From: Pocillopora damicornis
Taxonomy: Eukaryota
Assembly (NCBI RefSeq): GCF_003704095.1
Contig: NW_020846920.1
Location: 1-64,000 of the forward strand
Length of the DNA stretch: 64,000 bases
Direction: 5' to 3'
The notes beneath the pieces are model-generated. The model was not told where the DNA came from and did no database searches. It saw only the letters and a program-made list of their open reading frames with translations. The position numbers were made by a program, and so were the translations under genes. This document shows positions 1,940 through 64,000 of the stretch, one piece after another; positions within the stretch are counted from its first letter, which is position 1; each line of letters begins with the position of its first letter.

Positions 1940-4815
1940 AAGCAGCGACAGTATTCAGCTTGGTCCACGTGCAGCGAATTACGTGAGTCAACTTGTTAAT
2001 GAGTTCAGAGCAAACCCGACTGGAAGTCAATTTGACAAGTGATTTGCCCTCCACGCAGAGGAGAGGACCCGGTCAATTTTTTTTACCCCAAAATATTCAT
2101 CTGGTGTCCAATAGGTCATTACGGATTGAAAATAAATTGTCCCCTTCACGGTAGCCCATTGACACCTGGATTCTTTACGGATGAAGTTGATAAAAAAAGT
2201 CCAAGGAATCCTCGCTTAGTCTACGATTTACGTGGAAACCTGTTACTCATTCAGAGAATGTATACTTGCCACTTCAAAGGATCGACACATCGGTACTTGT
2301 CAGCCAGCGAGCAAATACTTGCAAGCATTCCTCGGATCCACAGACAGAGTTTTTTTCCAGTAGTGTTGTATAGATCGGCATGTACAAAACAATTAGTAGA
2401 TTTGGTAGAGATGCAAATACTCCAGGGCGTAAGTTTCCTTAAAATCAGCGAGGGACTTGCCGCCTTAAACTATAAAGAATTCTGTGAGCGTTCAGAGTGT
2501 TCTTCCCTGGTCTCAAGCTCCTCTGGATCATCTGAGGATGAATTATATCAACAATTCTATAAGGATACCATGTAATCATTTCCCAGTAACGACTACTTAA
2601 TGTGTTTATTTCTATCGGATTTTCAAACTAAGCAATCACTGTATGAGAAGGAAATGAAGAAATGTGTATTAGGAAGCAGGATAATTTCATGCGACCACAC
2701 CTTCAGGGTTAGCAAGTTTATTGGAGCAAGGAGGACCACTGACAATAAATTTGTGAAACAATTTGAAAATCTTTTCATAGTTTTAAACGAAAACCACCAG
2801 ATTATTGGATGGCGGTTAATTACGTCGACATCTTTTGAGGAAATCCGCTCGTTACTACAGGAATTAAAACAGGAGATAGATGTAACCCGTGTTATCGTAG
2901 ATGACTGCTGTAAAGTAGGATCACTTTATCAGTCGGTATTTCCTGACGTGGAGGTCAAACTCGACTTATTCCACGCGGTACAACGAGTAACGAAAACAAT
3001 TTCCAAAGGGAACAGAATTGTCAAAAAAGTTTTCTAAAGAATTTGGGATGATATTCCGAGCCAGAGAAGATTCTAGTGAAGTCCGTAAAATGCCCACACC
3101 TCATCCGGAAGTCATGATAGAAAATTTAGAAAACTTTGTGAAAAGATGGCAAACGTTTCTGAATGAAGATAACATGGAACGAACTTTGACTGAAATCGAC
3201 CATTTACGTCGACGCATAAGGAAGGGTTGCTTGTCTGACTTAAATCCGGGCGAAGGCACAGAATCTAACGAAAGCCTTCATCACGTCTTGAACAGATCAC
3301 TGCTGTGTGGTGCTACCACAATAGGCCCAGAATTAGCAATTGCTGTTATCACTCCTTTATTCTAGAGCATTAACTGTAAGCAGAGAGGTACAAAACATTG
3401 CAGAAACTCGCGAATAGTCCCATTCATTCCCCTCATCAAGCATGGATCAGAAGACAGTGATTTAAATGAATACATGGCAGGTGCACATCTCGGGTCAGAT
3501 ATCCCAGAACAGGTACAGTTGGATTGTGTGTGGAACACTAATGGTGCTAATAACAACGCTGATACAGTAACCAACAGCATTTCTCAGGATGAGATAGTTG
3601 TCATTGGCGATGTACAGGACATGTGTAATGAAACTGTCACCAAATTACTATTAAAGAACATGACACAATTACGAAGTATCTTAGAAAACATCAATAAAGA
3701 CAGTCAAGACCGATGTTTCAATGCATACGATGTGCCACTCATGCAGCTCAGCAGTGTAAAACAAACTTTAATCACAGATGAAGACGTTTCACAAAACACT
3801 GATGTCAACCATCGTCAATTGCTTCTAAAACATCTCGCTTCCTTCAATTTACGTATAGACCCAGTCAGTGGAGATGGTGATTGTGCCTTCAGAAGCATCA
3901 TTGTGCAAGTTCAAAAAACCCAGGAGTGGAATGACGAGGAATCAGCTCTCCGTCTTCACTGCCTTAAACTGCGACTAGGAAAAAGTATCAATGAAGATGT
4001 GTTCCATCTCCGACAACTTTTCGTTGATAGCGTTCAAAGCAACGACTACTACCAAATGCTAACCGGAATTCCTATTTCTGACATGAATGCTGAAACAGAA
4101 AGATTTCGGGATCAGAATTCATTCTGTGGTGATGTAGGAGATTTGGTTATAAAAGTTTGTTCTGATCTTCTCCGAATACCCATTATTGTCGTCACTAGTC
4201 TCAATGGCACTCCATTTGTCCCCTTCATTCCTGATGACGCTGTCACTGACCGAGCCATCTACATAGGGTATACTGCTTTTGGTCCAGGACACTACGATGG
4301 GACGGCCGTAAATGAAGCCAACATTGGTAAGATTTTTGGCCTCTAGCAGAATTTTCAAAACTATCAAATTTTACAAGCCAATCAATAAGCGCTATTAGTC
4401 TACAACTTTTTTCCAACCCTCACCTTCCCCTTCCCTCTCCTCCAAGCTTATTTAATGGGTTACTGCCGTTTTACTTCCCCTTCCCCATGCAGCCTAATTT
4501 CACTTTTTTTTTGTTTTGTTTTTTCTGTTTCCAAGGACTAAACTCAAAAACTACCAATAAAGTATGCTCTTGTGGAAAGAACAATGCCAAGGATAGCGAA
4601 AAGGCGTCTTGTACAAAGGACGACAAGGGACACAGCCATTGTCCCTGCGTGATTTCGGGCATTTTTGTTCCCGCAATTGTAGATGCAAGAGGTGTGAAAA
4701 CTCAACCATGCAAGCTGCTTGCTCTTCTACAAGTGAAGTTGGATACACCATTGATGTTTCCTGCAAATGTGGCCACAACAAAGTAAAATACGATAATAAG
4801 TACATTTCCTGCCGA
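1940..4815 (+). mobile_element. Pseudogenised DNA transposon: DDE transposase (Mutator/KDZ-like) fused to an OTU cysteine protease and CXC-like Cys clusters
   Basis: ORFs 2039-2575, 2600-3037, 3018-3365 and 3474-4346 join into one protein across in-frame stops (2573-2575, 3363-3365) and frameshifts (~2035, ~3015). Transposase-type motifs: SCDHTF, VLNENHQ, IVDDCC, KLDLFHAVQR, GTESNESLH. OTU motifs: SGDGDCAFRSI and GPGHYDG. A phase-1 intron (4327-4535) leads to CSCGKN..C..CPC..C..C.C..CEN (frameshift ~4660) and a second CKCG unit, which runs into the gap at 4816. Superfamily assignment is uncertain. Confidence 0.7.
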
Positions 4816-18574: not shown

Positions 18575-21500
18575 TCACTCTTGATCAGAAGAAGGAACCT
18601 GGTGAACAGACCGTGGGATCTGCTGTGAATAAGTCTTCGACGAATCGTCGTTTGCTGGCGGGATCAATTCATGTTTCGTCAGCTCCGGTCCCTGGGTAGT
18701 TGGCACATCTCCGACGCGACCTACTCGGCGGCATCCGAATAACCGGCAATAGGCTTTCCTGTAGGAAGGATTCATGACTCCATAAATTATAGGGTTAATG
18801 GCGGAACTTGTAATACCAAATATGGTATACATGTAATAGGTTCCACGGGTTAGCTCCCATTCCGACCCAAGAAATGCATCGACAATGTCAATCACCAGTA
18901 CTGGTGTCCAGCACAGGACGAAACCTACCACAGTAGCAAATAAAATCTTGGTGACCCTGATATCTTCCAACGAAATTACTATTTGGCGGGTGTTTCCTTT
19001 CCGAAGATTGTTTGCAACGTTTTTCTCATGGGCTTTCAACGCTTTGAACACACTCAGGTAGCATACGATGAGAATTAACATTGAGATGGCAATAAAACCG
19101 TAAAAGGGTAGCACGAGCAAAGTGAACTTCGATTCCATGAAACAAAAGAACTTTCCAGGTTGGAATACGTAATCTTTACCAGCCGCAGTGTAAGTCAAAG
19201 GTGTGATAAAGGCAGATGCCCATCCACCGAGTATGATGAGGATTGCATTCCTTGGAGTGAAGATAACTCTGTACTGTGAGGTTTTGACAATATGAAAATA
19301 TCTGAGAAACAAAACCAAAAGGTATCAGTAGATGGACCCTTTTTGGGAAATGGTGTCAGTAAATATGAATCTGTTTCGGCAAATCACTTCTAATCAAGTG
19401 TGGTAGAGGTTTAGTCATTCATGTTATTTCTATCCAGATGAATATAGTGCAATTCTAAATTGTAATACTTATTGGACATTGTGTATTTCTGGTGGTATAT
19501 AGCATCCTCCAAAAATCAGCAGACATTTTAAATTTTAATTGCGTCAACTCCCTGATATTAGGCGCAATGTAAACTGCTCGAGTCAAGGAAAGGAGTTAAC
19601 AAGAAATCTCTGGTTTCGTCTCTAAACTGGAGGAGGAACCATAGATTGAATTTCAAGGAGTTACATGATAATTTAGCTTAGCAAACGCAGGCCGGTGCCT
19701 TCTTTCCAACCAATAGAACCCAGTGCTCGTGCTTTCCCGCTCTTTCATCGGCTCTGCGCCTTTCAACGCAAGGAATAAAAGGAAATTCTTTGAAGTAATT
19801 TTCTCTTAGAATCCCTATCCTGTCCACCCCGACTAGATGCAAAACTATTTTCAGTTAAACGTGACTTGCAATGAAAGCTTTTTTTGATGAGTTCGATTAA
19901 GTGTCCCCAAAATATTTAAGAAGAACCACAGTATCTACGCTACCGATTTTTCCGTCAGATTTGTGAGTTGTTATACATTTTAGTCAATTTTAAGACGGTC
20001 GGTTTCCCAACCTAATTTCAGCATAAACAACTCAAGTCAAATCAAATGTGACCGAAAAACTCCTTAAGAAAAAAAGCGGCATCTTAAAGTTATAGCCAAT
20101 TGTTTCAAATTCTGCTCATACAATTCGCTTAACTTACAAGTAACAATTCAATTAAGCTGGTAGCCTGAAACCAATTTGAAGTATTTACTTTTTGGTTAAA
20201 AAAAATTATTCATCTAATGAATTTTATTATTGCATTTCTTTAACAACGGAGATAAAACACTCAAATGGAATTGAATCTTCCAACATTTTACCATAGATCA
20301 TCATCATGACACTAAAATGTACGGATGAAATGAGAATGCAACTATTAATAATTCACCAGAAATTTATGCGTGTCGCATGTTATTCCAAAGTTTTTTTATT
20401 TATTTATTTTTATCTTGACTTGTGGAAACAAGTGCAAATAATAATTTTCCCGGTTTGGTACTCCGAAAAGAAAAAAATGGATCAGAATCAAAATATTAGA
20501 ATAAAGCGAATTGCAACTCTGTGAATAGGACTTCCGTGGTTTAAATAACCTCACTTTAAAGATAACGCCATTTTTTTGTTTAAAAAATGTCTTCTTGAAA
20601 GAGGAAAAAGTAATAATTGGGGTGAATCCAACTGTCAAGACAGGGTGTTCCGAATAAATGTAATGACACTGTATTTGCCAATAAAGTGTTTACAAAGGAA
20701 ACCAGTAATAAAAGAATCGTGCATGGAAGGTTTACCTTTTCCATTTAACAACCTTGGAAGTAGCAAATTGAATTTTTTTTTTCATCCATTCGCACACACG
20801 ACACTTTGACTCAACTGATCCTAACAGCGGGAAGGACTATTGTCAATGCCACATAGCACAAGGACCATCATTGTTAACGACATTCATTTTTTTCTTCTTT
20901 TTTAACCCTGCATCGGCACAGCTTAATGAGAGTTTTTCCTGAAAACGATTTGCAGATCCTACCTTGCGCTATATTTTTTTTCTAGTCTCGTTCAATAAAC
21001 TGAGAGGAAACAAATTATTTTGCTTCTGTGTAATAAAAGAGGGGGACGCAGAAGACAACGGTGAACAAAAAGGGAATAGTGAGGCGACGGGTTAAGTTGA
21101 CCTTATAGAGCGTTGATACTTACAAAATTAAGCCGAATGATAATCTAGGTTTATATGATCTACAAGGAACTGAGCTGCACGAGTCTGATTGGCCATCGAT
21201 TGTAGTGCGGAAACTAACATTAAATTTTAGGTTTGGTCTTTTGTCTAATAAGTAATTTTAAATGATGTTTCCTCTTGCTCAAGGGAGAAAACTTGAATTT
21301 ACCCTGATTGTAGCTTTGCTTTACAACACCGTTTCTCGTCCTCGTCATTATAATACATGTAGCGCAATTACAATTCCCCTGACCCATTCTATCAGCGAAT
21401 GGCGCTTGCGAGCCGTTTATAAACGAATGCCAAAATACGCCTGGAAAAAATATTCACTAGAGCTAAGATAAAAAAAGTCAAACAAATATTGAAAACAAAG

Positions 21501-54961: not shown

Positions 54962-56898
54962 TCAATCGATTGCTACAATTTTAAACAAAACATAACCATC
55001 GCCGTAAGGACATCCTCCAGACACCGCCGTCCAGTTAGCATCAGGCGGGATAAAAGACCCGCCTCCTCCGGCATGAAGATCAAGGTTCTTACTCTTGCCA
55101 TCGACTTGCACCCCACCACCAGAGTATCCACCCCCTCCTCCACAATTTCCCCCGCCACCGAATCCTCCTGTGCACTTGTTTATTATGCTGTATCCACCCC
55201 TTCCTCCTGTTTGAAAAGATTTGCCTCCATCTTTCTGGTCACATGGTTTGTTACAACTGGACGCCCTATAGCAGCGCCCATCCGTGAGAAGACCTCCACC
55301 ACCTCCAACACCACCTAAGTCTGCATCATTCCCCGACATGCAGACCTTCCCTCCCTTTCCTTTTCCCCCAGGATTGACGCTACCACTCAACCCGGCCTGA
55401 CCAGGATCACCATCTACCAAGTCAGCTGCGCCACCCCCGCCAGACACAGCCAATGGACTGCCATTGCCTGCCAAAACAACAAAAGTTCCTCCTCCGCCAC
55501 CTCCACCCCGTTTGCCTCGCTGCCCTACTAAAATTGTCAGCTGTATTCCCTGTTGAAGATGGACCGTCCCATTTAGTTTTGCTCCTTTACCACCGATGGT
55601 ATTAAATCCCTCGTGATTCCCACCTGTAGCTCCGCATAACTCGAGGTAATACGTGGCCGACAAAGGAATGTCCCATGATTGCAAACCGTCTTTCACTAAA
55701 ATCCCCTCCAGTGATGTACCCTGGTACAGCGCGTTATTTACTGGCCCAGACTTACCCGTTGCACCCAGTGTAGTGAAATGATATTCGATATCTAACAACA
55801 CAACAAGGAAAACCTTTGCTCAGATAGGAAACGAAAAGTTCTGTCTATACACTTTAGACGTGCAAAAAATGAAAACTTCATTCCACCTTTTACATGCATT
55901 AATTTATTTGACTATGAAATAAAAAAGCATTAAGCATATGGCGCATATCGGTACACGCACACCGTGAATACTCTGATAATATCAAATGAAATAAACTTTC
56001 ATGTCGCGATACATTGGGCTTTATAATAATGTTACCTACCTATCTTCTTTTCGCACCTGTCCCCAAACCACGGAAGTTTGCATTTGCACCGACATTTTTG
56101 TTTGTCGTTGTTGTAATTGCAGAGGCCTCCATTGAGACAGACCATCTGGTCGCATTCGTCCTGAATCAATGGTAAAATCGTCGGAAAAATAAATGAAGGT
56201 AAACAAAGCTACTAGACTTCACATAGAGTCGCATCTGTAACAATGTACTAACTCGGAGCTTATATCTACTTACAATAGCTCAGTATTACATTTCAAAGCT
56301 CCTCAGAAATTTAGTAATGGTCATGATTGACATTTGGAAGCAAAAGGTTCTCGTTTTTTATAAGTGAGATATGGAAATAAACAAAATCAGAAAAATATTT
56401 CGAGAGGAATGAGATATGGAAATGGGGCACACAGGAAAAACAGTTTAAGAGACGAATATCATCTAAAAATTAATTAACCAACAGAAACTGAAATCTCAAG
56501 ATATTACAGTAAACATGTAAAAGAAGAACTTTGTCACCCACCATAACGTTGATACTACTTTGAAACACTGGAGAGTAGGCAGAATATGTAAATCCTTCCG
56601 CGTACATCAATTCATCGCCGGAAATTAAGGAATCAACGTGGTCATTTAACTCACACAAGAGCTTATTCTCCGCTGAGGAAATTCCAAAGTTCGTGGACAC
56701 GCATCTGGTCTCCATCAAGCACGAATGAGCGCAAGACAATGATGTAGAACCGTTTAGAGTCCTAATCTGGTGGCCATTAAGCCTGTGATCCAAAACTGTT
56801 TTAATAGCACCCTGCATGTAACGTTGTTCGAAGCTGCAAGAAATTCCAAAAATATGAAGTGCAGTAACAAGAACCCACAGAAAAACAGGTGAATTCAT
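54962..56898 (-). CDS. Secreted PAN/Apple-EGF-ALK/LTK-like glycine-rich-domain protein (paralogue A)
   Basis: Exons 56898-~56542 (signal peptide; LDHRLNGH...SCAHSCLMETRCVSTNF...CELN), 56160-56040 (EGF: CDQMVCLNGGLC...CKCKLPWFGDRC) and 55791-54962 (FTTLGATG..GP...GLQSWDIP...GGKGA...ILVGQRG...GGGGGTFV...GGFGGGG...GGGGYSGGG...GGGGSF...GDGYV-stop). Confidence 0.88.
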
Positions 56899-57922
56899 CT
56901 CGAAGACCACTCAATATCATATAACTAAGAGAAAACTCATTATAGTTAAGACTGATCGTTTCTCTTAAGGCACAAGGTGTTGTAATGGCCACTTGCGTAG
57001 ATTGTCTATGAAATCAGTTGCTTTTTGAGCAAACACTGATAATTATGCTTTCCACTGACATTAAAACTTCTCTTCGATACAATAATGGAAGTGCCAGATA
57101 CAGTAAACAATAAAAGGGATGCTTAAAAGCTGTGGTCGAACAAAACACATTAACGTTTGCTTTAAGTAACTGGTGACGTGTCATTAGGTCAGACTAAAAT
57201 AACTGTTTCAAACTCTGGTCACCAACTCTGTATCCCGTCTGTTTTTACAATCGCCGATTTCAGTAGTAATAATGGTAATAATAACAATCATGATTAAAAT
57301 AATAACTTATTATTATTATTGAGTAGTAATTTTAGCGTTTTTTTCTTAATTTTTCAATTTCCACTGTTAAATTAATACTCCTGTTAAAAAAAATTCCCTA
57401 ATCTTTTAAATCCATTGTTTTACTTTTATCGCAATTTTTGGGAGTTAATTTATCAATTCAGAATAAAAGAATTACGATGATAGCTCAAAAAACTGGAAAA
57501 TAAAAAATAAAGATACTAATAATAGTTACGACAATAATAATAAATAAGGATTATAATAATGCCGGAAAAACACTGCGCACCCAAAGATGTCATTAGAGAT
57601 GCACCTTTTAGCAATGCACATGTCCAAAAGTCAATTTAAAAAGTAAGATCGTGTCAACATTTAAATTACAATTTAATAAAAAAATTGCACCATTTCAAGA
57701 AAACTTATTTAGTTTCATTTATATTTTAATAAATCAAAATCGTCTGCCGATTATCTGACAGTTGCCAAGGAGAAGTATCAACAAGATCAAAACGTTCCGA
57801 TAGAACGTCGAAATTCTGTCTTCCATTTACCTTAAAGTATAATGATACATTGAAACAAAGTAAACATTATTAAGTTCAAGTCAAGGATAAAGTGTTTCAC
57901 CGAGGAGAATTCAGCAGGATGT

Positions 57923-60889
57923 ATGCAAGATCCCTGGGTTAAATTTGCAAAGCACTCTTCAATCATGTTCGTCAAAGCTATTATGGCCTTGGTATCATAT
58001 TTCATTGTCTTCGGATATTTGCTTCACTTGCCACAATGTTCAGCCTGGAAAAGAGGACAGAACAATTTATCCTTTAATGGTGCTCTCTTCTGCCGTCAAA
58101 ACTTTGCACTGAAAACGGACATTTTAAGAAAAGTGAAAACTTTCGGGGAGATTCAATGTGCGTTTGTTTGTTTGTCTGAAAACGACTGTGTCGCACAAAC
58201 GTACTGCGACGATTCGCCAAGGAGAAAAAATCCCAAAGGAACATGCTATTTACATAAAAACGGCGTTAAGAACGAAGAGAACAGTGCCCGTCTCGTAAAA
58301 AGTAAGAGATGCACCTTTCAGCAATACATGGATTTAGACGTAAGTCAAAAAATATTTAGTTTTCTGTTGACGAAAATATAGATAAATTCTCTTCTAAATG
58401 TTTCATATCTTCTGGTAGCGATGAAGATGTACTAACAACCACATCAAATTAGGTATCTTTGATGAGAAACTTTACAATTCAAAGGATTTCACAATTTTTT
58501 TATTCAGGATCTTAGTATTAATTAAGTGTCTTAGAATTTACTTTTAGTCGGAAAAAAGCATTCTGAGCGCAGGGCTCAAATCAAAATATGTTTGCTAACT
58601 TAGAATTCATTGCATTTATTCAAAGTGATGAACTTTGTCTCCTCAATGTTCATTTTCATAACCGCAAAAAAACCGAAAGCAACTAAGTAAGGAAAACCTT
58701 CGCGTTTAATTGTGCCCTGCCATGCTTTAGTGAAATTTTATCGCAAGGAAAAATTATATAAAGGGAGGTAAATGACAGGCAAGGCAGTGTCTAGCAGTAT
58801 TGATTTATGTACAAGATTACAATCGGATCTTAGACAAACATTGTGTTTTTAGCGCTTAAATTGCATGCAAATATTGGCTTTAATCATCATAGGTGCCTAA
58901 CACATGTTTTCAACCGCAAAAAAAAAAAACAATCGTCAGCTTATCTGAGGCTATGAATGAAAACAAGTAAATGAATTGTTGCCATCGAGAGCGTAATTTA
59001 TCTTACTTCTTCGAGTCGTATATAAGGCCTTGAACGAGCATTGATTGCATGAAGGATCGGATTCCAGGGAATGTGAAAAAAAAGAAAAGGGTAGATTCTC
59101 TGAGGCGGGGTGTTGTAGTTTGCAGTAAACACTTTGTTTCTACTAGTAGTTGTAACAAGACATCAAAGAAATCAGAAGGTTACAAAATTAAGATCAAATA
59201 TTGCTACACAACGGAAATATAAACGGCCAAACATACAAACAAGGTTATGACGTGCATAAAAACACAGAGTAAAGTAGATTAGTCAGGCAAAGATCCATAC
59301 TAAAAAAATATCGAGCGGGCTGTAAAACATACTAGACTGGCCCAATATGAAATAACTTTATGGGTTTACTGCTGATACTGCCTTTAATCAAAAGCAACTG
59401 TTCGAGATTAGGGTGTTATGAATCTTGCAGGAGGTCTCGTGCTCAAGAAAATGTCAAAATGGTATGAAGTGTCAGTACGACTATGATACCAGAAAATGCC
59501 AACGCAGATGTGAGCCGCCCTACACAGGAATTGATTGCAACCAGCTTCAAGGTAGAATCCTCAGCGCATTACATTAAGCATTTCAAGAGCTGCAACACTT
59601 TTTCTTAACGCAAAATTGTGTAAATCAAGAAACCAGTAGCTTCGAACAATACCAGGTTCACCTCATCCTCATCAAAAAGTAGTTGCAAGCTGTACCTATG
59701 GGATGAAAAATAATTTGATTTATGTCCTAATGGGATTTGCTTTGGGGAGGCAGCAGTTGTGGAGGCGCTCGCCCATCACAGCTGGGGTCTGGGTTCGATT
59801 CCCGAAGTTGTGGGTTGAGTGTGATGAGTGTTCTCATCCGCGCTCCACTTAGTTTATTCACAAAAACCAAAACTCAACATTTTAAAAAAAAATAAAGGGT
59901 CGCAGACGAAGAACCATTAGGCATCTCTATAATGATGCCCTTTATAACTAAAACTTTGTCTCTCCAATTCACTCGTCGTCCAAATGGGATCGAGATAAAG
60001 GGAATCCAATTTATTGTGCACTACAACAGGAAGTGAGATTTACTTTGGTTTTATTCCAGCCATATCCTTTCGTTTCACCACTCTTGGTGCACAAGGTAAC
60101 TCTGGGCCAATATCGACTGCTGAATATGTGAACACGTCACTACAGGGAACGGTAACACTCGACAAAGGGGTCCAGATCTGGAGAGTGCCATTCACTGCTC
60201 TTTATAGGCTCAAAGTCGCTGGGGCTTCAGGAGGGAAGGCGTCATCCTCAGGGGGAAAGGGTGCAATCGTAGCAGGAGTGTTGCTGCTAACGAAGGGAAC
60301 TGTGCTGCACCTTTTGATTGGTCAGAAAGGACTTCCAGGAAGTTCTGGTGCAGGAGGAGGTGGGGGAACTTTCGTAGTTTTTAACAAAAACACGCTTTTG
60401 GTAGCAGCAGGTGGCGGTGGCGGTGGAGGTGGTCATATTACCTCAGAAGACGGAGATGATGGTCAAGCGATCAAAGCTGGCAGCGTTTATGGTGGTGTAA
60501 ATGGTTTGGGTGGATCAGTGTGCGCTAGAGAGGACAACAATGCAGGGGGAGGAGCTGGATTTAAGGAAAATGGCAAATGTAGTCGCAATGTGTCATGTTC
60601 CTTAACTCCTCATCCATGCAACGAGTCCGGGTTGGCCTATGTAAATGGTGGTCTGGGTGGCAATGGGAATGGTGTTGGAGGATTCGGCGGGGGTGGGGCG
60701 GCATACAAAGATTTTGGAGGAGGCGGAGGGGGTTATTCAGGAGGGGGAGTGCATGCCACGTCTTTGGGTTCACGGGCAGGAGGGGGTGGATCTTACTGGG
60801 CCGTAGGGCGGTTGAAGTCAAGCAATGACACCAACTCTGGCGACGGATACGTATTGATAGATTTCAATAACAGTTTAAGAAAAAAATGA
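57923..60889 (+). CDS. Secreted PAN/Apple-EGF-ALK/LTK-like glycine-rich-domain protein (paralogue B)
   Basis: Exons 57923 (or ATG 57965)-58339, 59431-59551 (EGF-like) and 60060-60889 (FTTLGAQGNSGP...GVQIWRVP...GASGG...LLIGQKG...GGGGGTFV...VAAGGGGG...GGFGGGG...GGYSGGG...GGGGSY...GDGYV). Intron phases (0, 1) match paralogue A. Confidence 0.9.
59745..59845 (+). mobile_element. Truncated tRNA-derived SINE
   Basis: ...gcgctcgcccatcacagctggggtctgggttcgattcccg (B box) followed by tgtgggttgagtgtg. Confidence 0.55.
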
Positions 60890-61957
60890 TTGATTCGTTG
60901 ATCTCTCTTCTTTAAAGTCTTTGTATTCCAGTGCTATATGTTGCCAACGCGTTAGTGGAAATATTTGTGTCAGGGCGCTATTTCAGGATTGATAGATCTG
61001 AAAGAGAGCTCTACCAGCCGCACAGTGTATGGGCACGATGAATTTTATGGGGCAAGCAGTCGGTCCATCTACAACTTATGGCGCGAATCTCCAGTTCAGA
61101 AGACAGGTGGAACTTTAGGTGGTAATACCACAAAAACAAATGTTGCAGATCGATGCTCGCTGGCCAATTGCAAGATGGCGTTTATGCACTAATAACAGAG
61201 TTGAAAACTACGTTCTTCAAATCAAAAGGATATTTTATAATTTTTTTGTTTGTGCAGATGAGCAGAAGAGGGCATATTAACTGTAGCGAACCAAAAGGAA
61301 ACTATGTGACCGATATAAATGAGCTCTGTTATCGCAGACCAAGTAGCTGGAGGGGGGGGGGGGGGGGGGGGCATACTCTCATACCTTTTATTGGTCTGCA
61401 TAAGCTCAATAATAGAGTTGAATAAGAAGACAAGTTGCAAGGGAAAGTGAAGACCAGCCGACATTTTTGATGTAATGGATTTCTTATCACGCTCCTTGAT
61501 GCGTTAAAACAATTAGTTGACTCAGTCTTATGTTGCACAATAAAATTACCCACTCCAAAATCGCTGGAAAAATGTAGCGCAAACACTCATCTTTATCACA
61601 AAAGCAACAGATCTTAGAGTAACTTTATTTTCTCTGCATGAACAAAAATGTAACGAACAAAAAACGTCAATTATATACGGAGAGAACCCAAAACTAAACA
61701 AATGGGATCTCAGAAGGAACAGATCTTGAAATAATTTCAATTTGTTTACATTTACAAGAAAAAACCTATCAAATCTGTCAATTCGATAAGGAGAAAACTC
61801 AACATATACGGAAAACTTCCGCCAAGATGTCTTGCATTTAGAATAAGTTTAATATATCACATAAACATAAATGTGCAACGAATAAAGTATTACTTAAAAT
61901 GAAAAATTTACGCTTGAAGTATTGAATAAATATAGGAACACAGTTTAGATCGAGAAG

Positions 61958-64000
61958 ATGGCTGAGAGAGCTGCGTTGATTCATGTGTTCACATCCACAT
62001 GTGCTTTAGTTGTTCTAGGAGAATCGCTACAATCATTGCACTGGAAACGTCTGAGTGATAGCTCATACTTTGATGGAGCAGTTTTACTCCGGCGTGACTT
62101 TGCATTTAAAAGGGACATCTTAAGAACAGTGAAAACATCGGGGGAAGTTCACTGTGGCCTCGCCTGTTTGTCTGAAAGTGACTGCATCGCACAAACGTAC
62201 TGCCGCGAGCCGTGGCAGAAACTCAAGGGAACATGCTATCTGCATCGAAGAGGAATCAAAGACGGGCTGGCTGAAGATGCCTTCGTGAAAAGCGATGGAT
62301 GTACTTACCAACAATACATAGATTTTCACGTAAGTACATTTTGCATTATATTTGTAATAAAGTAATTTTTAGTATTCATTTAAAAAAAAAGGAAAAACAA
62401 AAAAAACAAGGAGCAAGTAATGCGGAATTATTTTCAATTTAAACTATTCATTTACCGTTTCCATTTGTCTCCAACAAATGACGAATTCTCAATGATTCTC
62501 TGGACATTGATTATTTACAGTGGAAATAATTAACAGTTTGGGCAAAACAAACACGCTGTAAGGATCAGTGAATCGGCCCATCGGAATAAACGTTCACCCG
62601 ACCAAAAACCAAAGAGGATTTGATAATCAATTCAAGTCGAATTTTGAAAGCAATTCAAGGCCCAAATTTCAGAGTAAAGTACAAATGCAGTAAGAATTAC
62701 TGAATTGGCTGGCGTATCGGATAAACGTCTATCTAACTAAAAACGGGGGAAGATGTGATAATCAAGTCGAATTTGAAGTCGTTAAAGAAGAATTTAAGGC
62801 ATAACTTTTCCATTGCGGTATTTATTTTGTTTCTTAAATCATTAATTGTGGTCAAGAGACCGAACGATAAAAGAAATGAAATTTTTGATTTCCAAGGAAG
62901 CTCTCATCGTAAATATATTTCTGAAAACTGCCATAAAACTTAAAGAAAACAACTTGCTGAAAGAAGTACTGAAATACCAATTTTCTGAGCAATGACGAGA
63001 GAGGAGAAATAAAACAGCTCCGTTGATTAAATCACAGAGACTAATGAGAACACTTCCACGAGGTTGTGGACGGTGTTTAAAAAATAAAAACGATTTGTAA
63101 CGTGTGTAACCTTTCCTGTCAGACGCCTTGCTCAAGCAAATGTCAAAATGGTCAGACATGTAGCTATGACCATGATAACAGACGATATGCTTGCCTCTGT
63201 GAGAAGCCATACACTGGAATGTACTGTGAAAAGTCTAAAGGTAACATTTTAACAACCTGGGATGAGATCAGTCTTGCAGAGTTGTCACAGGTCCACCTTC
63301 GTCTGCTCCATTTTCAGATTGGGTTTAAAGAAAGCTTCCTGAATATTTTTACTCTTTCAATTTAGTAACAAAGTGAGGTAAAGCGAATTATGTTCTTAAA
63401 GAGCAGCAACGTTTCTTTAATTCTCGCCCAATAAAAACTTCAGCCTCAAAGAACATTGTCATTCGACATAGCAAAGTGATTATTAGTTCCTACATTCCCT
63501 CACAAATGCTTTGTTTTCTTTCTGTAGCTGAAAAGAAATTTGTCAATTTTCATAAGCACGAGACCTTTCCCCTTGTTTTCTGCAAGATTTCAGTGATGGT
63601 GTACACAACACTGTATAGTAGAAAACTCGAAGGCTTTTATTTGGGAGTAGTGGTGGTAATAGCACTATTTAAGCTTGAGATGATAACGCTGTCACAGTTT
63701 TTTTTAAAAAAAATCCAATTTATTAAGTTATCTTTTAATATCGATTATTAATCCATTAATGCATTGTTCCTTTGACTTCCTTGTTGTTTCAGCAATGGCC
63801 TTTTATTTCACTTTCCTTGGTGCTCGAGGCAACACTGGGCCGATATCAACAGCTGGATACAAACGCACGCCTCTAGAAGGGACAGTAACACTCAACAAAG
63901 GAATACAGATCTGGACGGTTCCATTTACCGCGCGGTATAGTTTCACTGTGGCTGGGGCATCAGGAGGGATGGGATATCAACCAGGAGGGAATGGTGCAAT
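61958..64000 (+). CDS. PAN/Apple-EGF-ALK/LTK-like glycine-rich-domain protein (paralogue C), 3' end beyond the window
   Basis: Exons 61958-62329 (clearly similar to B: FAFKRDILRTVKT.GEVHC..ACLSESDCIAQTYC), 63123-63240 (EGF) and 63793->64000 (FYFTFLGARGNTGP...GIQIWTVPFTARY...AGASGG). Confidence 0.88.

Follow-up and report, generated by a model that had tools for sequence, protein, structure and literature searches.

Three neighbouring, expressed genes of the coral Pocillopora damicornis encode proteins, predicted to be secreted, that carry the ligand-binding module of the ALK/LTK receptors, which is also found at phage tail-fibre tips, but that possess neither a detectable membrane anchor nor a kinase. 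They belong to a large, misnamed anthozoan family on which no paper was found. The genes were studied in a window of 64,000 nucleotides (positions 1 to 64,000 of contig NW_020846920.1, assembly GCF_003704095.1), of which gene A lies on the minus strand and genes B and C lie on the plus strand. Each gene has three coding exons, which contain a signal peptide plus PAN/apple domain, an EGF-like domain, and a TNF-like/glycine-rich (TG) module of around 275 aa, respectively (Table 1). All six introns are GT-AG introns in phases 0 and 1, and the predicted products have lengths of 435 (A), 441 (B) and 433 aa (C). The stop codon follows the closing GDGYV strand by 8 residues in A, 11 in B and 5 in C.

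Table 1. Location of the three genes and adjacent features; positions are those of the window and, beyond 64,000, of the contig
Feature	Position	Strand	Content	Support
Gene A, exon 1	56542-56898	-	119 codons; signal peptide plus PAN/apple	ORF with ATG at 56898; hydrophobic 19-mer windows above 1.6 only at residues 1-6; PAN_1 E 0.004, 17.3 bits (below cut-off); donor GTGGGT, phase 0
Gene A, exon 2	56040-56160	-	EGF-like domain	Open reading frame; Pfam EGF E 0.0014, 19.3 bits (just below the 21.5 cut-off); joint 55791/56040 CT..AC on the plus strand, i.e., GT..AG on the gene strand, in one RNA run (X1)
Gene A, exon 3	54965-55791, stop 54962-54964	-	TG module and stop codon	PF12810 25.1 bits (above the 24.5 cut-off); phrog_22713 71 bits; 46% identical to the B exon; no hydrophobic window above 1.6
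Intergenic region	56899-57964		Shared head-to-head spacer between the start codons of A and B	RNA contigs cover the whole spacer
Gene B, exon 1	57965-58339	+	125 codons (alternative in-frame upstream ATG at 57923); signal peptide plus PAN/apple	Orthologues align from their residue 1 at 57965; hydrophobic N-terminus; PAN_4 E 8e-4 (below cut-off); joint 58339/59431 GT..AG in three RNA runs; a poly(A) contig starts at 57815
Gene B, exon 2	59431-59551	+	Six-cysteine EGF-like segment with atypical C4-C5 spacing	No Pfam hit; 52% identity to the EGF exons of orthologues; joint 59551/60060 GT..AG in three RNA runs
Gene B, exon 3	60060-60886, stop 60887-60889	+	TG module and stop codon	PF12810 31.0 bits (above cut-off); phrog_22713 93 bits; PDB ALK, LTK and SCD-2 at E 5e-12 to 3e-8
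Gene B, 3' untranslated region	60890-61199 (at least)	+		A contig from a poly(A) RNA run covers 60772-61199 and beyond without a joint
Gene C, exon 1	61958-62329	+	124 codons; signal peptide plus PAN/apple	Identical to residues 1-124 of database model P0128; PAN_4 E 9e-5 and PAN_1 E 1.5e-3 (both below cut-off); 53% identical to B exon 1
Gene C, exon 2	63123-63240	+	EGF-like domain, canonical six-cysteine spacing	Pfam EGF 22.8 bits (above the 21.5 cut-off); matches P0128
Gene C, exon 3	63793-64601 (window ends at 64000), stop 64602-64604	+	TG module	ORF; genome search hit at 63777-64598, 66% identical to B; matches P0128; AATAAA at 64729

The arrangement described by the sequence-only reading, i.e., three paralogues sharing one three-exon plan and the same intron phases, is real, and all the described elements are present at the stated coordinates. 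Both introns of B are supported by spliced contigs in three RNA runs from three studies, whereas support for A is less even: intron 2 is found in one run, and intron 1 only in a 58-nt contig with 28-30 nt on each side, which is weak. Furthermore, a second, non-canonical joint (56198 to about 56620) appears in gene A in two runs. Genes A and B are transcribed divergently, and RNA contigs join the spacer between them to spliced B exons, which may mean overlapping 5' ends or merged contigs. Concerning gene C, a public database gene model on the same 127,758-bp contig (P0128, 433 aa) matches our exon model exactly. Chance is excluded, as the paralogues share 46-66% identity over 275 aa and orthologues in another coral genus are 82-86% identical.

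Homology of the TG exon to ALK/LTK is supported by sequence, profile and predicted fold. In addition to the Pfam matches of A and B, a profile built from the family scores 109 bits (E 2.7e-30) against human ALK, aligned to the last strand, and 84 bits against LTK. The AlphaFold model of the exon of B reaches a pLDDT of 94.2 and a pTM of 0.93, and the top 20 Foldseek hits are all ALK/LTK TG domains (TM 0.68-0.75). The module is, however, not specific to these receptors. Phage tail-fibre and giant-virus proteins carry it as well and score at least as well against the coral exons as ALK does: pairwise, B scores 91 bits against a phage protein and 44 bits against ALK, and by profile score ALK falls inside the viral range of 49-143 bits. 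In 25 viral loci, 28 of 41 TG modules reach the exact C-terminus of their protein, as in the coral proteins, and in the two phage contigs examined the TG gene follows tail-fibre genes.

Although the PAN exons of the three genes remain below the Pfam cut-offs, 11 of 20 family members hit PAN_1 (best E 1.3e-18), four cysteines are invariant, and the model of P0005, a 68%-identical orthologue, hits the HGF N domain, plasminogen, factor XI apple domains, MIC4 and the galactose lectin SML-2. Hydrophobic segments lie only at the N-terminus or in strands that are beta in the model, and no transmembrane segment was found; signal peptide and secretion rest on hydropathy only.

The family is larger and older than assumed by the sequence-only reading. 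The genome holds at least 52-61 TG exons, many of them beside PAN exons and arranged in tandem clusters, and the trio represents the EGF-bearing branch of a PAN-(EGF)-TG family present across Hexacorallia, with orthologues in stony corals and sea anemones. About 20 orthologues in 10 or more anthozoan species are 393-441 aa long and end at the same place. Within the TG module the glycines are invariant, whereas the loops between the motifs vary in sequence and length.

The interpretation given by the sequence-only reading is supported, including the order of signal peptide, PAN, EGF and glycine-rich domain, the lack of transmembrane helix and kinase, the homology to ALK/LTK, and the order of EGF and glycine-rich domain, which is reversed relative to ALK (cf. 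PDB 7nx4). Also its expectation that automated annotation would mislabel these proteins holds, as RefSeq names the orthologues "ALK tyrosine kinase receptor-like", "leukocyte tyrosine kinase receptor-like", "glycine-rich cell wall structural protein", "loricrin-like" and "keratin, type I cytoskeletal 9". Three qualifications are needed: the term "locally expanded" understates the size of the family; "built on the ALK/LTK domain" is a naming convention and not a statement of origin; and the functions it proposed (ligand decoys or carriers, or lectin-like recognition molecules of mucus, immunity or symbiosis) remain inference, with the evidence leaning towards recognition and away from the decoy.

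What the analysis itself establishes are three intact, transcribed paralogous genes, each encoding a protein of around 435 aa, predicted to be secreted, with a predicted cleavable signal peptide, a PAN/apple domain, an EGF-like spacer and, at the very C-terminus, a TNF-like beta-sandwich fused to a polyglycine-II helix lattice in the predicted fold, the module being homologous both to that of ALK/LTK and to the receptor-binding tip of phage tail fibres. We regard architecture and secretion as highly probable. The function, in contrast, is only inferred, by analogy and without binding, localisation or cell-type data for any member: the proteins would act outside the cell as soluble recognition or adhesion molecules, in which the invariant glycine lattice would be a rigid scaffold, whereas the variable loops, together with the PAN domain (a protein- and glycan-binding fold), would bind targets such as surface glycans or proteins of microbes, symbionts or prey, or components of mucus or matrix. 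In this view, they cannot signal by themselves. The size and tandem arrangement of the family, its variable loops and the viral modules favour this reading, as does cyanophage Pam3 gp24, in which the same TNF-like plus glycine-rich pair is described as the host-recognising part with a variable distal tip (PMC9608196). However, phage fibres are trimers held by an N-terminal helical bundle that the coral proteins lack, such that the analogy may not carry over, and the B/C clade is well conserved between coral genera (82-86% identity), which is not what fast-evolving immune receptors usually show. The recognition function is tentative, although the explanation as a whole appears somewhat more likely than not.

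Among the alternatives, a role as structural extracellular material, in which the glycine-rich, disulfide-linked proteins would build mucus, extracellular matrix, the cnidocyst wall or the skeletal organic matrix rather than recognise specific targets, survives best, but is unlikely. The family is glycine-rich and large, PAN and EGF are common in matrix proteins, and transcripts are present in adult colony RNA from several studies. The glycine runs are, however, predicted to fold into a compact globular lattice and not a fibrous repeat, and no mention of the family was found in the coral papers searched, mostly without their supplementary proteome tables. Even less likely are soluble decoys or carriers, which would sequester or present a cytokine-like ligand bound by the TG module as ALK/LTK bind ALKAL. 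The homology extends across the whole ligand-binding module of ALK, and soluble ectodomain-like binding proteins are a common regulatory device. On the other hand, no ALKAL (PF15129) match was found in the genome, which is a weak negative, and no tyrosine-kinase exon lies within 280 kb of any TG hit (only 130 of 1021 kinase candidates were scored), such that no partner TG-kinase receptor was seen. Moreover, more than 50 divergent paralogues are hard to reconcile with buffering one hormone, and the N-terminal PAN domain has no counterpart in ALK.

That the genes are fragments of true ALK-like receptor genes, with transmembrane and kinase exons further downstream or missed by the assembly, is very unlikely, although the RefSeq names suggest a receptor and the genome is fragmented into 4393 contigs. 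In-frame stops follow the last strand closely in all three genes, a poly(A) contig runs unspliced through the stop codon of B, gene C starts 1 kb after the end of B, a WD40 gene on the other strand follows C, no kinase-like ORF lies within 15 kb after A, and the orthologues end at the same place. Recent horizontal acquisition from a virus or bacterium, or contaminating viral DNA, to which the higher scores against phrog_22713 (71-93 bits) than against Pfam's ALK model (25-31 bits) and the pairwise scores of B might point, is excluded for recent transfer and otherwise the least likely, as the genes possess spliceosomal introns, animal PAN and EGF exons and spliced transcripts, orthologues exist in chromosome-scale anthozoan assemblies, all 23 cnidarian TG modules form one side of a branch against 39 viral modules (SH-aLRT 96), and by profile score ALK (109 bits) itself falls inside the viral range.

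Among known systems, PAN/apple-domain binding proteins (HGF N domain, plasminogen, factor XI, Toxoplasma MIC4, Sarcocystis lectin SML-2) share the fold of the N-terminal domain of the orthologue model (Foldseek probability 0.9-1.0), but none of them combines PAN with a TG module. The glycine-rich domain of C. elegans SCD-2 (invertebrate ALK, PDB 7lir), also an invertebrate TG module, is the best single-sequence PDB match to exon 3 of B (E 5e-12, 49 bits); SCD-2 is, however, a receptor kinase, its structural match is weaker (TM 0.59), and its polyglycine helices are fewer and shorter (bioRxiv 10.1101/2023.11.25.568672). The TG module of human ALK and LTK (PDB 7nwz, 7n00, 7nx1, 7lrz) exhibits the same fold as the coral model and homologous sequence over the whole module (Foldseek E 1e-16, 26-29% identity), with the same motif series from the FTTxGA start to the closing G-D/H-G-x-V strand. 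Yet ALK/LTK continue into an EGF-like domain, a transmembrane helix and a kinase, whereas in the coral proteins the EGF precedes the module, the protein ends 5-11 residues after it, and the N-terminus is a PAN domain instead of heparin-binding/MAM/LDLa domains.

Concerning phages, the Gp38 adhesins of T-even-like phages (Salmonella phage S16, PDB 6F45) share the concept of a polyglycine-II lattice as a stable platform for variable, target-recognising loops at a fibre tip; Gp38 has no TNF-like domain and did not appear among the fold hits; the similarity is one of concept, without homology shown. In phage tail-fibre proteins with TNF-like plus glycine-rich domains, i.e., Pam3 gp24 (PDB 7ypx, 7yfw) and PHROG family 22713, the same two-part module sits at the extreme C-terminus, phrog_22713 scores 71-107 bits against the coral and anemone proteins, and uncultured-phage proteins score 91 bits pairwise. 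The part of Pam3 that recognises the host receptor was already noted to resemble the ALK ectodomain (PMC9608196), although the Foldseek match to Pam3 itself is weak (probability 0.4-0.5). The phage proteins are virion parts, trimerised by an N-terminal helical domain and encoded next to tail-fibre genes, whereas the coral proteins have a signal peptide, PAN and EGF instead and form their own clade.

The genes A, B and C in the last 9 kb of the window share one plan of three coding exons (see the table below), and the arrangement of three paralogues described in the sequence-only reading was confirmed. Open reading frames and splice sites yield products of 435 (A), 441 (B) and 433 codons (C), and all six introns are GT..AG, in phases 0 and 1. 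Exon 3 of gene C ends 601 bases beyond the window end. The exons were searched one at a time, whereas a gene model already present in public databases (P0128, 433 aa), which is identical to our model of gene C, and the natural orthologue P0005 served as full-length proteins. For intron 1 of gene A, a donor at CCA|GTGTTT was initially considered but was rejected in favor of 56542|GTGGGT, as indicated by the RNA joint. Elsewhere in the window, three consecutive ORFs look like a mobile-element remnant, with matches to DUF6729 (E 1e-8), weakly to a DDE ISL3-type transposase (E 0.003, below the cut-off) and to an OTU-like cysteine protease (26.2 bits, above the cut-off); a 247-aa ORF represents the C-terminal two thirds of a rhodopsin-family GPCR (7tm_1, E 5e-24); and a Thr/Gly/Ala-rich, mucin-like open frame is interrupted by an N stretch.

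Coordinates of the three genes and of further features observed in the window, in other contigs of the same genome and in viral contigs
Feature	Location	Position	Strand
Gene A, exon 1	window	56542-56898	minus
Gene A, exon 2	window	56040-56160	minus
Gene A, exon 3	window	54965-55791	minus
Gene A, stop	window	54962-54964	minus
Gene B, exon 1	window	57965-58339	plus
Gene B, exon 2	window	59431-59551	plus
Gene B, exon 3	window	60060-60886	plus
Gene B, stop	window	60887-60889	plus
Gene C, exon 1	window	61958-62329	plus
Gene C, exon 2	window	63123-63240	plus
Gene C, exon 3	window, continuing on the contig	63793-64601	plus
Gene C, stop	contig, beyond the window	64602-64604	plus
Mobile-element remnant	window	2039-4346	plus
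GPCR ORF	window	18575-19318	minus
Mucin-like open frame	window	47312-47761	minus
Non-canonical joint in gene A	window	56198 to about 56620	minus
A-B spacer covered by RNA contigs that continue into B	window	56621-58339	
Skip from inside B exon 3 into the 3' UTR	window	60359 to 60917	
Cysteine-rich exon	genome contig C3936	17391-17762	minus
PAN-TG paralogue in one open frame	genome contig C483	185694-186713	plus
Protein with three TG modules	giant-virus MAG contig L027	3308-7132	
FG-GAP, discoidin and TG protein	IMG/VR contig L040	188-4441	

Concerning expression, ten runs on record as RNA, originating from three studies, contain 29-41% of the sampled words of 57800-63790, and eight further runs, which are only guessed to be RNA, contain up to 55%. 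Contigs from four runs were compared with 55200-61199; as these are assembled contigs and not reads, they inform on splicing rather than on transcript ends or levels. Both B introns are spliced exactly as predicted in three runs (58339/59431 and 59551/60060), and intron 2 of A is spliced in one run (55791/56040), whereas intron 1 of A appears only in a 58-nt contig, which is weak support. Contigs from two runs furthermore join exon 1 of gene A to a point 38 nt upstream of the exon-2 acceptor through a non-canonical joint, and one of them also retains intron 2; this could be an allele difference, an assembly artefact or an unspliced isoform. A contig from a poly(A) library runs from 60772 through the B stop to beyond 61199 without a joint, which represents a 3' UTR and not a splice into further exons. 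One contig, from a single run and not seen in the others, skips 557 bases from inside B exon 3 into the 3' UTR with GT..AA ends and is probably an assembly artefact. The whole 1-kb spacer between the divergent start codons of A and B is likewise covered by contigs, which continue into spliced B exons, suggesting overlapping divergent transcription or a long B 5' UTR antisense to A exon 1.

The TNF-like plus glycine-rich (TG) exon passes the 24.5-bit gathering cut-off of the Pfam family PF12810 (ALK_LTK_GRD) in A (25.1 bits) and B (31.0 bits), and 19 of 20 orthologues and paralogues match this profile at E 0.01 or better. The full-length gene C product, however, reaches only 16.8 bits, such that routine automatic annotation would miss the domain. 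The B exon matches chains of ALK, LTK and C. elegans SCD-2 in the PDB at E 5e-12 to 3e-8, and a profile of 40 family members matches human ALK at 109 bits (E 2.7e-30), aligned from the first strand to the last. An AlphaFold model of the B exon has a pLDDT of 94.2 and a pTM of 0.93; its 20 best Foldseek hits are all ALK/LTK TG domains (E about 1e-16, TM 0.68-0.75), whereas the next hits, phage tail parts followed by TNF-family members, are weak.

The N-terminal exons of the three window genes score 17-23 bits against the Pfam PAN_1 and PAN_4 profiles, below the respective cut-offs of 21.4 and 27. However, 11 of 20 aligned relatives hit PAN_1 at E 0.01 or better (best E 1.3e-18), four cysteines are invariant across all 20, and the model of orthologue P0005 (68% identical to B in the TG part) hits the HGF N domain, plasminogen, factor XI apple domains, Toxoplasma MIC4 and the galactose lectin SML-2 at probability 0.9-1.0, on which basis the assignment to the PAN/apple domain is accepted here. 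The middle exon is EGF-like with a six-cysteine pattern: gene C lies above the Pfam EGF cut-off of 21.5 bits (22.8 bits) and gene A just below it (19.3 bits), whereas gene B gives no hit because its C4-C5 spacing is three residues instead of one, although it aligns to the others. A hydropathy scan, on which the prediction of a signal sequence and of secretion alone rests, shows only an N-terminal hydrophobic segment, plus strands of the TNF-like part that are beta in the model. There is no C-terminal hydrophobic tail, so a transmembrane helix or GPI signal is unlikely.

Splicing from the TG exon into transmembrane or kinase exons would have contradicted the proposed architecture, but no evidence of it was found. 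In-frame stop codons fall 5-11 residues after the closing GDGYV strand, gene C begins 1 kb after B ends, a WD40 gene on the opposite strand follows C, and the 15 kb after A hold no kinase-like ORF. A genome-wide PF07714 scan placed no kinase exon on this contig or within 280 kb of any GRD hit, but as only 130 of 1021 candidates were scored, this is supportive rather than conclusive. About 20 full-length relatives from corals and sea anemones are 393-441 aa long and end at the same position.

The genome assembly (234 Mb in 4393 contigs) contains 61 exon hits to the B TG exon and 52 to PF12810, in tandem clusters on several contigs, and at least ten of these have a PAN exon just upstream on the same strand, in a scan that scored only part of its candidates. 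In one paralogue (contig C483), PAN and the TG module lie in a single 381-aa open frame with no intron between them, unlike in the window genes. Contig C3936, which also has weak PF12810 hits, carries a cysteine-rich exon that resembles a uromodulin-type D8C domain by eye; of the 60 kb examined of this contig, 15.5 kb (26%) is N. The closest relatives are Pocillopora verrucosa and Stylophora pistillata proteins, and named relatives come only from anthozoans, i.e., Stylophora, Pocillopora, Oculina, Desmophyllum, Montipora, Acropora, Nematostella, Exaiptasia and Actinia; orthologues include XP_022786679 and XP_022786739/40 in Stylophora, XP_032232687 in Nematostella and XP_020916710 in Exaiptasia. 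They are named "ALK tyrosine kinase receptor-like", "leukocyte tyrosine kinase receptor-like", "glycine-rich cell wall structural protein", "loricrin-like" and "keratin, type I cytoskeletal 9", such that the mislabelling predicted in the sequence-only reading proved correct. Two architectures exist: SP-PAN-EGF-TG, found in this trio with relatives in Oculina, Desmophyllum, Montipora, Acropora and Nematostella, and the more common SP-PAN-TG. In a tree, B and C each pair with their own Stylophora orthologue, and their duplication therefore predates that split; together with robust and complex corals they form a clade with 99% support, whereas A groups loosely with an Oculina and a Nematostella protein that also carry EGF.

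Beyond ALK, the ESM Atlas pointed to PF12810 proteins of about 275 aa labelled as bacterial or phage. Metagenome proteins of 284-292 aa, considered in this context, turned out to be GRD-exon ORFs of other cnidarians and not phage proteins. A scan of IMG/VR with the family alignment returned 25 viral loci, whose ORFs carry complete TG modules with the same motif series and include proteins of 300-350 aa, fibre-like proteins of 1200-2800 aa and a giant-virus MAG protein of 1275 aa (L027), in which a DUF4347 domain is followed by three tandem TG modules. Of 41 modules, 28 reach the exact C-terminus of the ORF, and in the two phage contigs examined the TG gene directly follows tail-fibre genes. 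Three phage contigs (L023, L029, L030) each carry three separate TG-module genes of about 335-355 aa, all ending at the module, which is a phage-side expansion of the same domain. A 1418-aa protein (L040) combines seven FG-GAP repeats, an F5/8 type C (discoidin) domain and a C-terminal TG module, another adhesion-type context for the module.

The analysis itself thus establishes, with secretion predicted from hydropathy, that the products are secreted, kinase-less three-domain proteins and that the genes are expressed in adult colonies, and the interpretation in the sequence-only reading is in this respect supported; any binding function, in contrast, is inferred. In both known settings the TG module is a binding device, for a helical cytokine in ALK/LTK and for a host surface receptor in phage fibres. 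In the coral family the glycines of the lattice are invariant, while the loops between them vary in sequence and length, and the partner PAN fold binds proteins and glycans elsewhere. The copy number, tandem clusters and C-terminal placement resemble the phage usage more than a hormone system. No TG-kinase receptor was detected in the partly scored kinase scan, and PF15129 (ALKAL) gave no match in the genome, though in a search without a positive control for a gene that would be small and split by introns. We therefore tentatively favor a role as extracellular recognition or adhesion proteins, although the good conservation of B and C between genera argues against very fast arms-race evolution for this particular branch. 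A structural role in mucus, matrix or capsule appears doubtful, and a function as decoy of an endogenous ligand still less likely. It remains possible, but is considered unlikely, that anthozoans keep a germline-encoded repertoire of 50 or more secreted TG-domain proteins working as diversified soluble recognition molecules for microbes, algal symbionts or prey; these would be the animal counterpart of phage tail-fibre tips, and the ligand-binding module of the ALK/LTK receptors would then descend from such free recognition proteins, rather than the reverse. Recent viral transfer or contamination is excluded, as all 23 cnidarian modules form one side of a branch against 39 viral ones (SH-aLRT 96), in a tree that contained no ALK sequences and hence does not bear on the deeper history; the nearest viral module is the first one of the giant-virus protein.

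The domain, its fold and its phage relatives are known, the structural link between phage TG domains and ALK is already published, and the gene models exist in RefSeq, but under wrong names. In the literature searched, including the ALK evolution paper, an ALK review, the Stylophora cell atlas supplements and a Pocillopora spatial-expression paper, we found no description or test of kinase-less PAN-(EGF)-TG proteins in cnidarians, and the main evolutionary study of ALK/LTK does not mention cnidarians. While the TG module is known functionally only as the cytokine-binding part of two oncogenic receptor kinases and as a phage host-recognition tip, it is found here in a third setting, fused to PAN and EGF in secreted animal proteins and expanded to dozens of copies in a reef coral. 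If these proteins bind microbes or symbionts, they would be a new class of cnidarian recognition molecule, relevant to coral immunity, symbiosis and disease; if they bind endogenous ligands, they would point to ALK-like signalling chemistry before bilaterians. In either case they give the ALK field natural, soluble, well-folding TG domains to compare with the receptor, and they show that names such as "ALK receptor-like", "loricrin-like" and "keratin" are wrong for these genes, which matters for every coral transcriptome study that reports them.

Compared with the ALK/LTK receptor tyrosine kinases, which are activated by ALKAL/Augmentor in vertebrates or Jeb/HEN-1 in invertebrates, the coral proteins possess the extracellular TG module, but the EGF-like exon precedes this module, whereas in ALK, according to its described domain order and the title of PDB 7nx4, a membrane-proximal EGF-like domain follows it. 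Neither a transmembrane helix, as far as the hydropathy scan shows, nor an intracellular tyrosine kinase domain was found. In pairwise comparisons, the B exon scores 44, 49 and 37 bits against ALK, SCD-2 and LTK, respectively, but 91, 82 and 70 bits against viral proteins, while the viral protein L038 scores 49 bits against ALK. Pfam PF12810 reaches 25-31 bits against the coral exons, whereas the phage family phrog_22713 reaches 71-107 bits against coral and anemone proteins, with 93 bits for B and 71 bits each for A and C. With the coral family profile, viral modules score 49-143 bits; human ALK falls inside this range, so the coral family is roughly equidistant from both. With the phage tail-fibre TG proteins (phrog_22713; Pam3 gp24-like) the coral proteins share the TG module at the C-terminal end, but instead of an N-terminal helical or fibre shaft for trimerisation and baseplate docking they carry a signal peptide plus PAN and EGF, their genes have introns and lie in an animal chromosome rather than in a viral genome context, and the cnidarian modules form a separate clade.
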